Assembly: GCA_907165135.1 (NCBI GenBank)
Contig: OU015569.1
Location: 2,356,001-2,420,000 of the forward strand
Reading direction: 5' to 3'
DNA length: 64,000 nt
From: Oikopleura dioica
Lineage: Eukaryota > Animalia > Chordata
The notes under the pieces were generated by a model that searched no databases, was not told where the DNA came from, and worked only from the letters and a program-made list of their open reading frames with translations. How positions within the stretch are numbered: position 1 is the first letter of the stretch; the number at the start of each line of letters is the position of its first letter. The translations under genes were made by a program, and so were the position numbers. Shown one piece after another: positions 49,394-54,229 of the stretch.

Positions 49394-50766
49394 CTTCTTT
49401 CGAATATAATTGAATAAATGCGACCCTACTTCCCAAGGCGGTTGATTTCAACTAACTCTCAAGCGCAATGTTCTTCAACGATGCGTCAAAAAAAGGGCTG
49501 GCTCGGGATAAAAAGTCTCGAAGATAGTCGCTAATCGGAGAATCGACCTAATTATGAGGCCCGGGCGACATTTTCGTCATCTAATTGCCCAATCGCGGGC
49601 AATGTTCCACTTCTTCAGATTCCAAAGTTGTGCCCTTTCAAATGCCGGGGATCATTCTTCAGTGACGAGGAGGATGCAGCTGGATTGATTGAGGATGTGA
49701 TGAGTAGAGCTCCAGTTTCGTATTTCCGAAAGGGCTCGCTCACGAGCTCGTCATAAATCAAAAAGAGTATTTAGCGTCAAAATGATCAAAACGCCTCGTC
49801 TAAGCGATTTTATAAAGCACTTTACGAGTTGACTTCAAAGTTGCACGAATGCGAAGTGTTTTTACTAAGTAACAACACGTCCTACTAAAAAACCGCTCGA
49901 TTCTCACGTAAATAGCTTCCGCAGGACAACCGTATAAATTGTGCGAAAACACGTGTTTACGACTCTATAAGAAGACCTATTTGTTACTTCTGGAAGCAAA
50001 GAAACTTCCTCCGTCGCTGGAAGAAATTGGAACCATTGACCTTGATCGTGGGGTGGCTCATTGATTGTCTTATTTCGAAAACGGGCATTCAATAAATCGA
50101 TTCTCCGAAAAACTGGAAGCTCGCTGAAGAAGAACTCTTTGAAAGTTATTTTTTCTACTTCCGATTGTCAAACAAAGAAATGGAAGTATTTTCAATGTTC
50201 CTACGAATTCGTAGTGTTTCTAACAGGAGACGATTTAATATGATGATGGAAGGCTTTAAGGATGTTTTGAAAGGACTTGAAACGCAGTTTAATCGAGTAG
50301 AATGAAGAAGGGAGTAGGAAAGAAGATAAAAGACGATGATAGAAAATGATTTCCACCCTGGGGTGGCGATGTGAGCTTCTGGCGCCTCACAATAAACTCT
50401 CTCCCGCTTTTTTTTCTGATGAGAAAAAAGAGCATCCAGCGACGGTGGCGCGTAGTAGCAGCAACACGACGAGTAACCACTCCACAATTTTTTTCTCTCT
50501 CTCTCTCTCTCAAATTAAGAGCTTCTTGGTCTAGTGGTGAGTAGCGAGTGTGTGTCGCAGCTCACTTTCGGGAAAACCTAACTTAAACGAGCTCGCCGAG
50601 AATTTTGCATTTTTCAAAAACGCTCCGAGCAAAATAAGAAAAAAGAAAAATATAACCACCGCGCTGAGATAAATTCCATTATAGAGAGCAACATCCAACA
50701 CTTCCAAAACACGAAGGAAAGAGAAAGCGGTTTCGAGGGAGGAACTGAGCTCAATTCCAATTTGCA

Positions 50767-52073
50767 ATGACAACTCCTCTTGCGCGAAAATCTGCCCCGG
50801 CGACCAGTTCCACTCAAGGTAATATCAATAATAGAAAGAAGCAATTGCGTCGATCAACTGTTTAGCCGCCGACTTTTACGGGGAAAGAAACACTGGAATC
50901 AGAATGGTTTCCACGGGCAAACTTGACGATGCCGCGGAAGAAGCCCGTAAAAATCTCATCAAGTCCATGGGCAAGAAGCCCCGTAACAGGTTCAAACGAC
51001 TTTTACATTACTCTCAGAGGACTTTTCACTTGTAATTTTACATCAAAACAAGTCTTGGTGATAATAACAACACACGGCGGCGTGTTTAGATAAGGCTGAT
51101 TGCCCTAGTCTCACAATAAGCTCATACTTTTCGAGCTCGAGCGAGTCGAGGGAATCCTGTTCCGCTTCATTTATGGCGGCTCGTTAAGCTTTCCAAAGTG
51201 TATCCTTTGCGCTGCGATCGGCAGATGGCATAGCCTTTTCAGCTAACAGAAATTTTGCGAAAAGAGCATTAATAATTAATTACCCGATGGTAACTATTGA
51301 TTACCGAAAAAAGTATGTCAGGAAATCATAAAATAATTGAAAGCCCCTATTGAGGGTAGGAGAATGGCAATACGCATCCTTAGGTTAATTAGGTTAATCT
51401 TATTGGGTGTCCATTTTTCGGCAAATTAGATTTTTGTGGAGTGATCAATTTGACACTGATTTCAGCGTCACTGACAGATGGAAGCCCAAAGAAGAGCCCA
51501 CTCAGGTGAGAGTTTGTTATTCTCAATATATCTCGGGGCTTAGCCCTTATTGTCATTTAAATTCTTTGTGCGTGAGTTCTGTACTCAAGACGAACTTAAG
51601 GAACAAAAGATTGGGCCGGACCAGAAGATTCAAAACTCGTACTCTGCGTACGAACAAAGGCGCAACTCGCGAATCGCCGAACGCACGGAGCAACTCAAGA
51701 AACTCCAAAAGGAACAGGAAGAAAAAGAAGCGGAAAGAATGGCCCGCATCGAGAAGCGTCGCAATGAGAGGTAAAAACAACAGATTCTCTTCTTTGTCTT
51801 CACTTGAAGAAATTCCAATTATGGATTTACTAGATTGCCTTATCCACCGAAAGATAAGCGTAAAAGCGTCTCAGAAGCGTATTGAAAAGGCCCGTCCAGT
51901 GGAATCACATTGAGTTAATCTCGGCGCCAGGCTTAGATTACTGCCTTTAATTGACTCATTACTTCAGATTGTCGTCAATCGGTGGTGTCGGGGAACCGGA
52001 TCTGGCAAACGGCGTTAAAGATCTCAAAATTGGCGCAGGCGTGTCAAGGAATGTGCTCAATTTCGAATCCTAG
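50767..52073 (+). CDS. Small coiled-coil protein with an N-terminal histone-H3-like ARKSAPAT motif
   Basis: Exons 50767-50818, 50866-50989, 51466-51505, 51577-51770 and 51968-52073 join in frame via GT-AG introns: MTTPLARKSAPATSSTQAADFYG...KKPRNSVTDRWKP...EQLKKLQKEQEEKEAERMARIEKRRNER.... A possible alternative last exon lies near 51833-51886. Confidence 0.72.
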
Positions 52074-53455
52074 AATCACTTTCGTTTCATAATTTTTCTA
52101 TTGTTGAGCAGTGGAAACAGTTCTAGTGTGCCAGCTTCGCGAAAAACCGCTCCTCTTCCAGCTTCTCTCGACGAAACTAGTAATTATCCCCGCCTTTCTC
52201 ATCGCTAATGTGGAGCAAAAAAAATACAAAATACAGATTTCACCCTGTCAAACCAAAATTACAGAAAAAGAGTTTTCAAATTTTCGTGAATTAACAACCT
52301 CTTCGTTCCTAAATTGTAATCGTTTACGCATGATATAGGACTCTTATTGACTGCTCATTATGGAAATAAAATTGCACTAGATGAAAAGCTAATTAGAGCT
52401 TTTAGAGAGTTGGAATTTTCAATTGTCCTATTCTCAAGCCTGTTCAATCTTTTCTTTCTCGTGCCTACAAAAAATGGTATAAATCCAATACTTGATCGGT
52501 AAGATCACTCTTGTAGACATCTTGGAAGCTTCGTGATCGTCTTTTGAAGAAAATAAGTACCTAAGGGAGCAAGTTGAAGTTGCTGTGTTGATTAAATCAT
52601 GCCCAGAATTTTGTTGCAAGGTTGCCGTCTTCGAAGTTCAAACTGCTTCTCAGAAAATTCGCGATTCAAGCTTGCTGATATTTTTTGAAAAAAAAAATGA
52701 TAAACAAACCGCAGAAGATTCTCTTTTTTCTTTTCTGCAGCTTAGGGTTAGACCCGATGCAAGATTGAGATTCACCTCAATCTTGCGCAGGTGAGCAGCA
52801 AGGCGATAGTGTCGAATCTCGGGAAGCGGTCTCGATTCTAAATCGCGCAAAAAGGTCGAATTCGAAAAACTGCAGTTGGAAGGAAATAGACAGAAAGAGA
52901 GAAATAGCTTCTAAGGCACAAACAAGCCGTCTAAAGGAGGCCGAACGCGGCAGAATTTACTAGTAACTGCCACCATCATTGGTATACTGTTGGATAATCT
53001 GACAGTGATCCGTTCCATGACAAACCGCGCCCATAATATTTTCGCTTTCTGAATACGCAAGAACAAGTGCACCGCACAGTTTATTTCTCTAAAAACGGAA
53101 ACGAAAGATTGTGAAACCATGATCTTGCAAAATCATCCCTTTTCTTACGAAAAAAAACGAACCTGGTGTGAAAAAGAAAGAAAGGATCGCGCGAATTCGG
53201 ATTTCCCGCAGCGGATCAGAGCCCGAGAATCATGCGATTGTTGCAGCTTAGGTTAACTGGCTCACGTTGGACATTATCAGACGGCGGCCGTGAGAGGATA
53301 ATAAGAAATATTAAGCCATAGGATTAATTCCCTCTCTACTAGAGAGACTAGAGAGTCTCTAGTCTAAAGAGTAGATAGCCCGAATCAAAGCGACTTTCCA
53401 AGTTCACGAAAAAGGGGAACTGAATTAGCTAATCAACGAGCTGATCAACGAATAG

Positions 53456-54229
53456 TATCCATCTCGGGACGACAAAGCTCGTCTTGCAAAATGCCTCAAC
53501 ATAGCTGAAAACAAGATTCAAGTATGGTTTCAAAATCGTCGAGCTCGAGACAGGTCCTAAAACTTTTGGGAGCTTTATTTAAATTTTCACAATTTTAAGG
53601 CGACCTAGAGGGAATCGCCGCAAAAGATTGGGACATCATGGAATGCCATTTCCGCCGTTCTCCCTGGGTCATCCGTAAGTTAAAAATTTTTTGTCTTTGA
53701 GCTCATGTCATCATTTTTTAAGATCGCCCTTCAACTCAGGATTCTTTTCATCGAGTAGTGATGGGCATGCGCCACAGATGTACCCCCCGCAGAACTTCAA
53801 CTGGCCGAAAATCAATTTTTCTTCACATTGTGAGTACTTCTGTGAATTTAATAATTAATCGACAGTAATGATAATTAGTAATATGCCGCCTTTGGTCTTA
53901 ACTTAAGCTAATGACAAATGAACGCATATTGGCTATCCTGGAGCATATTTATTTTAGATACGAACATATTTCCACAGAGCTGGTCGGCACCCTCCTTCGA
54001 AATACCACAACAACTTAACTCATTCGATAGGTACTTAATTTCAATGTTTAAAATCACGTAACCGATCCCAAGAACTGACCTGATGAGACTCAAACAATCA
54101 GAAGTCGCTTCGTCTCTCCAGTGGAGCAACAGTTCTTCAGTCGATTCCGACGTCTCTATTACGCCTCATACTCAGCATGTGACTGAGATTCCAAATGACA
54201 CTGACGGTGACTTCACTGATAACACATAG
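53456..54229 (+). CDS. Divergent homeobox transcription factor (helices 2-3 and C-terminal exons; N-terminal exons unresolved)
   Basis: Exon 53456-53553 encodes YPSRDDKARLAKCLNIAENKIQVWFQNRRARDR (Q50). Pro/Ser-rich exons follow, with a stop at 54227-54229. Confidence 0.85.

Follow-up and report, generated by a model that had tools for sequence, protein, structure and literature searches.

A conserved, two-copy histone H3-like motif in an orphan protein of Oikopleura dioica

The gene and its reading frame

The window analysed here is a 64,000-nucleotide (nt) stretch of the genome of the larvacean Oikopleura dioica (GenBank assembly GCA_907165135.1, contig OU015569.1, positions 2,356,001 to 2,420,000 of the forward strand), and positions below are those of the window unless stated otherwise. 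It holds a gene of six exons, with 555 nt in frame including the stop, which encodes a protein of 184 amino acids (20.5 kDa, net charge +10, no Cys). The N-terminal tail of this protein contains the octapeptide ARKSAPAT (50782..50805, +; residues 6–13, with K8 and S9), which is identical to residues 25–32 of histone H3 and is part of the extended sequence PLARKSAPAT that begins at 50776. A second copy of the motif, PASRKTAP, lies in the C-terminal tail (52131..52154, +; exon 6, residues 160–167, with K164 and T165). Exons 2–6 are backed by RNA joints from a sister lineage, and exon 1 by the comparison of lineages and orthologues.

Relatives of the gene were found by two routes. Exon 4 was compared with 1.84 billion representatives in an exhaustive phmmer search, and only two open reading frame (ORF) fragments were recovered, both on genomic DNA of relatives: P0001 (contig L009), which is 86% identical, and P0002 (L010), which is 53% identical and has exons 3 and 4 fused. 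A word search with exon 2, combined with a scan of metagenome contigs, added two further divergent loci, L011 and L013. L009 (a contig of GCA_977009715.1) and L012 (an ENA metagenome contig) are sister lineages of O. dioica, and L011 (a Tara Oceans contig) and L013 (a JGI metagenome contig) are distant orthologues with fused exons 1 and 2. Transcript evidence came from two RNA-seq runs (X7 and X8), mapped at 90–95% identity. The RNA donor belongs to an L009-type sister lineage, since the unaligned read ends match L009 exactly.

Exon 1 (50767..50818, +) consists of the ATG at 50767 and the rest of 17 codons, translated from 50767–50817 as MTTPLARKSAPATSSTQ, followed by G50818, which is the first base of the split Ala18 codon. 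An in-frame TGA lies at 50746–50748, six codons 5' of the ATG, and intron 1 (50819..50865, +; 47 nt, GT..AG) separates exon 1 from exon 2, which starts at 50866. A first-pass annotation of this DNA had read the exon as MTTPL-ARKSAPAT-SSTQ, behind an in-frame stop and ahead of a 47-nt GT-AG intron that keeps the frame, and each of these points is borne out. The 17-residue peptide is the same in L009 and L012, which differ from the window by 6 and 4 nucleotide changes, respectively, all 10 of them synonymous. Intron 1 cannot be aligned to its 40-nt (L009) and 48-nt (L012) counterparts, and the 100 nt preceding the ATG have likewise diverged, with 58–68% identity among lineages. In L011 and L013 the intron is missing and a single ORF runs from the Met through the motif into the box encoded by exon 2, which confirms the frame across the O. 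dioica intron. In addition, 50480–50766 contains no ATG, and the same is true between the conserved upstream block described below and the start in every lineage compared. These comparisons indicate that exon 1 is coding in the frame given.

RNA depth over 50767–50818 is almost nil among sister-lineage reads of at least 90% likeness. This is uninformative because exon 1 of the donor lineage is 88% identical, which is under the 90% mapping threshold. Seven sister-lineage reads, each 300 nt long, show an apparent joint from 50546 to 50864 that connects 50521–50546 with exon 2. The ends of this joint are AG..TT, which are not usable splice signals, so that an unaligned 5' untranslated region (5'UTR) and exon 1 most likely lie in between. 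A direct splice bypassing exon 1 was rejected, as no shift of the joint yields a splice site and a 300-nt read can hold both 5'UTR and exon 1. It is thus very improbable that exon 1 lies outside the mature mRNA of the window lineage and that translation starts only within exon 2, from the in-frame ATG at 50904, giving a protein devoid of the H3-like peptide: the near absence of RNA depth and the available Met would suit such skipping, whereas the purely synonymous change of exon 1, despite the diverged intron 1 and proximal UTR, the similarly synonymous change of the exon-2 part 5' of 50904, the lack of an upstream ATG, the use of the same starting Met by the intron-less orthologues and the seven reads that tie the upstream block to exon 2 all speak against it.

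Exon 2 (50866..50989, +) ends at the GT..AG RNA joint 50989|51466. It encodes an invariant box, FYGERNTGIRMVSTGKLD (50874–50927), followed by a short helix, AEEARKNLIKSM, which is seen in the predicted model of the L013 N-terminus. Relative to L009 and L012, exon 2 has 13 and 12 synonymous changes, respectively, and 0 nonsynonymous changes; the box is identical in L011 and differs by one residue (L to I) in L013. Exon 3 (51466..51505, +; S-VTDRWKPKEEPTQ) has RNA joints at both ends, shows 4 synonymous and 0 nonsynonymous changes and is joined to exon 4 in L010. Exon 4 (51601..51770, +) is bounded by the joints 51505|51601 and 51770|51968 and has 56 codons in a frame rich in E, K and R. AlphaFold2 predicts one long helix, a coiled coil or single alpha-helix, over residues 6–55 of the exon, with a mean predicted local distance difference test score (pLDDT) of 88.

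Exon 5 (51968..52048, +; R-LSSIGGVGEPDLANGVKDLKIGAGVS) is attached by the GT..AG joint 51770|51968, which is seen in ~190 reads and in a metatranscriptome contig. It is followed by intron 5 (52049..52120, +), which has 72 nt and non-canonical GA..AG ends; ~300 sister-lineage reads and a seawater metatranscriptome contig (X1) that covers exons 4, 5 and 6 run directly from 52048 to 52121. Exon 6 (52121..52208, +) ends with the stop TAA at 52206–52208, and its C-terminus, ...SNYPRLSHR*, is also found in L009. The downstream part of the first-pass gene model has to be replaced. There, the protein was ~170 residues long and ended near 51885, and the RNA joints instead place exon 4 in the helical frame, continue into exons 5 and 6 and give 184 residues. 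The same joints rule out a fifth exon at 51811–51885 ending ...SVSEAY*. A very basic frame for exon 4 (ORF 51407–51913) was also discarded, as it is in the helical frame that most differences from the sister lineage occupy third codon positions. Between the window and L009, exons 1–3 have 23 synonymous and 0 nonsynonymous changes, as against 24 and 14 in exons 4–6; on these counts, constraint is strongest in the N-terminal third of the protein.

No family matched in Pfam scans of all exon translations. A phmmer search of the PDB with exon 2 returned designed armadillo repeats only, through weak, repeated 17-residue stretches, a search of the ESM Atlas gave no usable match, and a search of the organism's own genome found no paralogue, so the gene is single copy. 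Family searches were made exon by exon and not on the joined protein, so that remote homology could escape them. The protein is treated here as a larvacean-restricted orphan, known only from larvacean-like sequences. Several identities were considered and set aside. It is not NOP16, since no exon matches Nop16 (PF09420) and the NOP16 gene of this genome lies 9 Mb away (G000:C2:11508539-11509448). The likeness to PKI (PF02827) is limited to a superficial ADF...R-N-T-G-I-R; the pseudosubstrate F-x(n)-R-T-G-R-R-N-A-I is absent and Pfam gives no match at E values up to 10. The EB1-binding SxIP motif ([ST]-x-[IL]-P) occurs as SVLP in L011 and as SSIP in the L009 C-terminus only, and its place is taken by TTPL and SSVP at the N- and C-termini of the window protein and by AEPV in L013. 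Finally, a D-box (RxxL) in ARKNLIKSMG, geminin, stathmin, TPX2 and PP1 inhibitors were either unsupported by the scans or out of register across orthologues.

The motif and its match to histone H3

The canonical H3 of the same genome reads ...LATKAARKSAPATGGVKK... in three H3 genes, and its residues 25–32 are ARKSAPAT, so that the earlier equation of the octapeptide with H3 25–32 holds for the organism's own histones. Whether such a match could arise by chance was assessed with a degenerate DNA pattern for the 8-mer, including both Ser codon classes, run over the whole 64.3-Mb genome (19 contigs). The pattern has five matches, namely the three H3 genes, the motif locus and a separate locus of H3-tail repeats, and reversed-pattern controls over the whole genome have 0. 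Expected matches are ~0.015 per genome in six frames, or ~0.002 among the 7 million residues of a proteome. The 8-of-8 identity to a modified segment of the H3 tail exceeds chance, in agreement with the first-pass annotation.

The identity to H3 stops at exactly 8 residues. Flanking sequences are unrelated (MTTPL and SSTQA, versus LATKA and GGVKK in H3), and 6 of 23 positions, all of them third codon positions, set the coding sequence of the motif apart from the H3 genes. The motif is therefore no recent copy of H3 DNA. Neither is the rest of the protein histone-like. As had been proposed, it has no histone fold: Pfam scans of every exon translation give no match to PF00125, and the sole long structured element is one continuous helix, unlike the three-helix histone fold.

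The separate locus, L008 (G000:C4:6153965-6156987), is an observation in its own right. It carries the second non-histone ARKSAPAT of the genome (C4:6155465-6155487, +) within a gene-like run of ORFs that has three H3-tail-like stretches, one of them at an N-terminus. In one stretch, LVTKAARKSAPAT, 11 residues equal H3 22–32 and are encoded by different codons. No Pfam match was found for L008.

Conservation of the motif can be followed into the distant orthologues. L011 starts MSESVLPASRKTAPASTTSANAETFYGERN..., and L013 starts MPAEPVQRKSAPATTADDYYGERN... behind an in-frame stop. The N-terminal motif is PLARKSAPAT in O. dioica, PVQRKSAPAT in L013 and PASRKTAPAS in L011. In the alignment of the N-terminal tails (A7), the sequences share only the starting Met and then P-x-x-R-K-[S/T]-A-P-A-[T/S], before they reunite at the invariant box, YGERNTGIRMVSTGK. 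The Arg is preceded by A, Q or S, depending on the copy, the Ser can be replaced by Thr, and the invariant Pro three residues before the Arg has no counterpart in H3, where this position is K23. Absence of the motif from orthologues, which would have refuted the first-pass annotation, is not observed for the core P-x-x-R-K-[S/T]-A-P, which is kept in L011 and L013. The exact H3 8-mer is confined to the three O. dioica lineages; the 7-mer RKSAPAT is shared with L013.

The second copy of the motif lies in exon 6, which reads ...SSVPASRKTAPLPAS... in the window and ...SSIPASRKTAPAPAS... in L009. Within the copy only synonymous changes separate the two, and its flanks are altered (V>I, L>A, D>H, Y>F). 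In addition, this copy matches the N-terminal motif of L011 at 9 of 11 residues. The core P-x-x-R-K-[S/T]-A-P is present in all five instances available (the N-termini of the window protein, L013 and L011, and the C-termini of the window protein and L009), and the flanks vary. Among distant orthologues, the contigs of L011 and L013 cover the N-terminal motif and none reaches the C-terminal one. In the predicted model of the L013 N-terminus, no secondary structure is assigned to the 15 N-terminal residues surrounding the motif (pLDDT ~60), and a short helix follows. The motif is a conserved island within a variable tail that is probably disordered, and the retention of its core in distant relatives, together with its repetition near the C-terminus, argues that it is a real, functional short linear motif.

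Conserved non-coding blocks and the neighbouring gene

A conserved block lies upstream of exon 1 (50335..50546, +; three-lineage alignment). It is ~210 nt long, non-coding and nearly invariant in three O. dioica lineages, where it exceeds the synonymous sites of the gene in conservation, and parts of it (GGCGC...TCACAATAAACT) are recognisable 5' of the distant orthologue L013. The block contains a CCACCC..GGGTGG palindrome, runs of T and a variable (CT)n. Its last 26 nt (50521–50546) are those linked to exon 2 by the sister-lineage RNA, and the block is probably the promoter together with the distal 5'UTR. Neither the upstream nor the intronic conserved blocks gave a match in scans for Rfam families and tRNAs. 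The genome has 49 exact matches to the 40-nt spliced leader of O. dioica, which mark it as that of this species.

Two introns hold features of their own. Intron 2 (476 nt) has otherwise diverged and contains a block of ~75 nt (51130–51210) that is ~90% conserved in L009 and L012. This block has a depth of 10–17 in sister-lineage poly(A)+ RNA, at least that of the flanking exons, and the reads extend into L009 intron sequence. RNAalifold folds it into a hairpin without covariation, and there is no Rfam match; candidate readings are a stable RNA from the intron, a separate transcript and a regulatory element. In intron 4, a near-identical strain (run X3, organism A) has, in a DNA contig, 81 other letters in place of the 70 nt at 51815–51886, which is a structural polymorphism inside the intron.

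Downstream of the stop, a likely polyadenylation signal, AATAAA (52365..52370, +), is recognised by its sequence in a 3'UTR block that is kept in L009. The block, ...TTGTAATCGT.TACGCATGATATAGGACTCTTA.TGACTGCTCATTATG..AATAAA (window 52290–52370; L009 5170–5240), is almost identical between lineages, as compared with only 79% identity for exon 6, and it may be an element of post-transcriptional control. Further downstream, the exon 53456–53551 (+) matches Pfam Homeodomain (E = 1.5e-11) and encodes the C-terminal half of this domain, ...KARLAKCLNIAENKIQVWFQNRRARD. The homeobox gene that owns this exon occupies ~53.4 to 54.2 kb.

Candidate functions and known systems

Arg at –2 with a residue other than Pro at +1 is the signature common to the Aurora sites H3 S10 and S28. 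This pattern, as R-K-[S/T]-A, is found in all five instances of the motif, and so is a Pro at +2 from the Ser or Thr, which is a feature of 14-3-3 mode-I sites. The reading favoured here, tentatively, is that the motif joins an Aurora-type phosphosite to a docking site of the 14-3-3 type, which corresponds to the S28 half of the H3 module. S9 and T165 would be substrates of a kinase that needs Arg at –2, of the Aurora type that acts on H3 S10 and S28, and the phosphorylated sequence R-K-pS/pT-A-P, with its Pro at +2, would be bound by a 14-3-3-type reader. From N- to C-terminus, the predicted layout of the protein is a disordered tail, the invariant box FYGERNTGIRMVSTGKLD, the long charged helix and a second disordered tail. 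Each tail has one copy of the motif, and the pair would fit a 14-3-3 dimer. The protein would act like the S28 half of the H3 K27–S28 module by virtue of shared enzyme specificity, and not through descent from H3. It is from this pattern that we infer the kinase, the reader and any role in the cell cycle.

Consistent with this proposal, phosphorylation of H3 S10 and S28 in O. dioica depends on Aurora2/INCENPa (PMC10733467). Furthermore, 14-3-3 reads H3S28ph despite the Arg at –2, and the Pro at +2 is a canonical determinant that explains its preference for H3S28ph (PMC3538786). The phospho-switch is favoured because interchange of Ser and Thr is neutral for kinases and phospho-readers and because two sites suit a dimeric reader. 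Of the two functions put forward in the first-pass annotation, a mitotic-kinase switch fits the conserved positions (R at –2, S/T, P at +2) better than a K27 decoy does. Several points weigh against the phospho-switch. The canonical 14-3-3 mode-I motif has its Arg at –3 (or –4), and here the Arg is at –2 with Lys at –1, as in H3 S28. The invariant Lys, the Ala at +1 and the Pro at –5 are left unexplained by a kinase and 14-3-3. The 7-mer RKSAPAT, common to two divergent species, exceeds in length what the specificities of the kinase and 14-3-3 demand, so that the K27 context might be recognised as well. Lastly, the conservation argument draws on two distant orthologues at the N-terminus and on none at the C-terminus.

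The motif could instead dock a partner that has nothing to do with the enzymes of the H3 tail, for example a domain that recognises proline or binds a basic patch, in which case the identity to H3 would be coincidental drift. The invariant Pro at –3 from the Arg and the A-P are not specific to H3, the exact 8-mer is found only in the three O. dioica lineages, and the exon-by-exon Pfam scans show no chromatin-related domain in the protein, all of which suit this alternative. A 7-of-8 or 8-of-8 match to so heavily read a histone segment is nevertheless expected only ~0.002–0.015 times per genome, and the SxIP, PxxP, RxxK and P[ST]AP registers fail across all five copies. To our knowledge, no nameable domain-binding motif fits P-x-x-R-K-[S/T]-A-P. 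Docking of an unrelated partner is on balance rather doubtful.

A true mimic of H3K27 is unlikely. In such a mimic, Lys8 (and Lys164) would serve as substrate, decoy or allosteric ligand of H3K27/K9-type enzymes or readers, such as EZH2-EED, G9a-type enzymes, KDM6 or chromodomains, and the neighbouring Ser or Thr would provide a methyl-phospho switch, in the manner of NOP16, JARID2 K116, histone H1.4 K26/S27 and G9a ARKT. In its favour, the exact 8-mer is present, the 7-mer is kept in L013, the Lys is invariant in five of five copies, and the genome has the other H3-tail-like sequence at L008. The A-P that follows the Ser or Thr is also the part that separates K27 from K9 in H3, as seen in KDM6 and PRC2 structures. 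A precedent exists in NOP16, with the weaker match ARRKAAP (preprint 10.1101/2023.06.13.544862), and O. dioica has H3K27me3 and duplicated EZH2 and EED, with no recognisable SUZ12 (PMC5240408). On the other hand, A25 of H3, a part of the ARKS motif recognised by readers, has A, Q or S in its place before the Arg, the TKAA that precedes it in H3 is missing and replaced by the invariant Pro, and the changes from S to T and from T to S imply that identity to H3 is not itself under selection.

Decidedly improbable is a more elaborate version, in which the protein would be a dedicated, bivalent, soluble copy of the H3 K27–S28 module, with both tails methylated and/or phosphorylated by the EZH2-EED and Aurora2-INCENP that also act on H3, and which it would titrate or tune allosterically. 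It has been likened here to JARID2 K116, NOP16 and EZHIP, in a host whose PRC2 has no recognisable SUZ12. If true, it would, together with the separate H3-tail-repeat sequence, amount to a lineage-specific layer of histone-tail decoys.

If enzymes of H3 S28 or K27 do act on the motif, the protein would be among very few endogenous, conserved histone-tail mimics and the closest K27 match reported. The host, a model chordate, has an unusual Polycomb system, and its Aurora and INCENP genes are duplicated. On the practical side, O. dioica laboratories use anti-H3S28ph and anti-H3K27me3 for staging of meiosis and for chromatin immunoprecipitation (PMC10733467, PMC6986761, PMC5240408), and a 20.5-kDa non-histone with an identical epitope could cross-react in immunostaining or blots. 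Staining of non-chromatin organising centres of the coenocyst by anti-H3S28ph was looked for in the O. dioica literature consulted and was not borne out. Mechanism aside, the analysis provides a corrected six-exon model of an apparently unannotated orphan gene and a testable short linear motif in two copies.

Histone-tail-like motifs in non-H3 proteins are already known from H1.4 K26/S27, G9a, NOP16 and the viral ARKS/ARSK sequences. What is new here is an H3-like motif that is unusually exact, conserved in evolution and present twice in an orphan protein, with a function proposed from sequence. Compared with H3 25–32 itself, the protein has the same 8-mer in a flexible terminal tail, with a Lys beside a phosphorylatable Ser and Pro at +2. 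It differs from H3 in the absence of a histone fold, the unrelated flanks, the other codons, the Pro at the K23 position and the second, C-terminal copy.

ARK[S/T] modules outside H3 include H1.4 K26/S27 (KARKSAGAA) and the G9a automethylation site ARKT, where methylation of the Lys and Aurora B phosphorylation of the adjacent Ser or Thr form a binary switch read by chromodomain proteins. H1.4 and G9a are chromatin proteins with known enzymes, whereas the orphan varies before the Arg (A, Q, S) and keeps the downstream A-P and the upstream Pro. For 14-3-3 bound to H3S28ph, the sequence recognised is R-K-pS-A-P with Pro at +2 (PMC3538786; PMC12238390), and both copies in the orphan keep these positions. 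The difference lies in the canonical mode-I Arg at –3 and in the phosphorylation of the orphan, which is presumed.

NOP16 is likewise a small, basic non-histone (178 versus 184 residues) with a K27-like segment near its N-terminus. Its ARRK29AAP is a reported endogenous H3K27 mimic that binds EED and JMJD3 and alters H3K27me3 (bioRxiv 10.1101/2023.06.13.544862). The two proteins are not homologous, and the match of the orphan to H3 is closer (8 of 8). Finally, the viral ARKS/ARSK mimics (SARS-CoV-2 ORF8, influenza NS1) resemble the orphan in being non-histones with a short sequence like a histone tail, for which engagement of histone enzymes has been proposed; the ORF8 case is disputed (PMC10833455). 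The viral mimics are 4-residue matches, in contrast to the orphan, in which the match extends over 8 residues, resides in a host gene and is kept across species.

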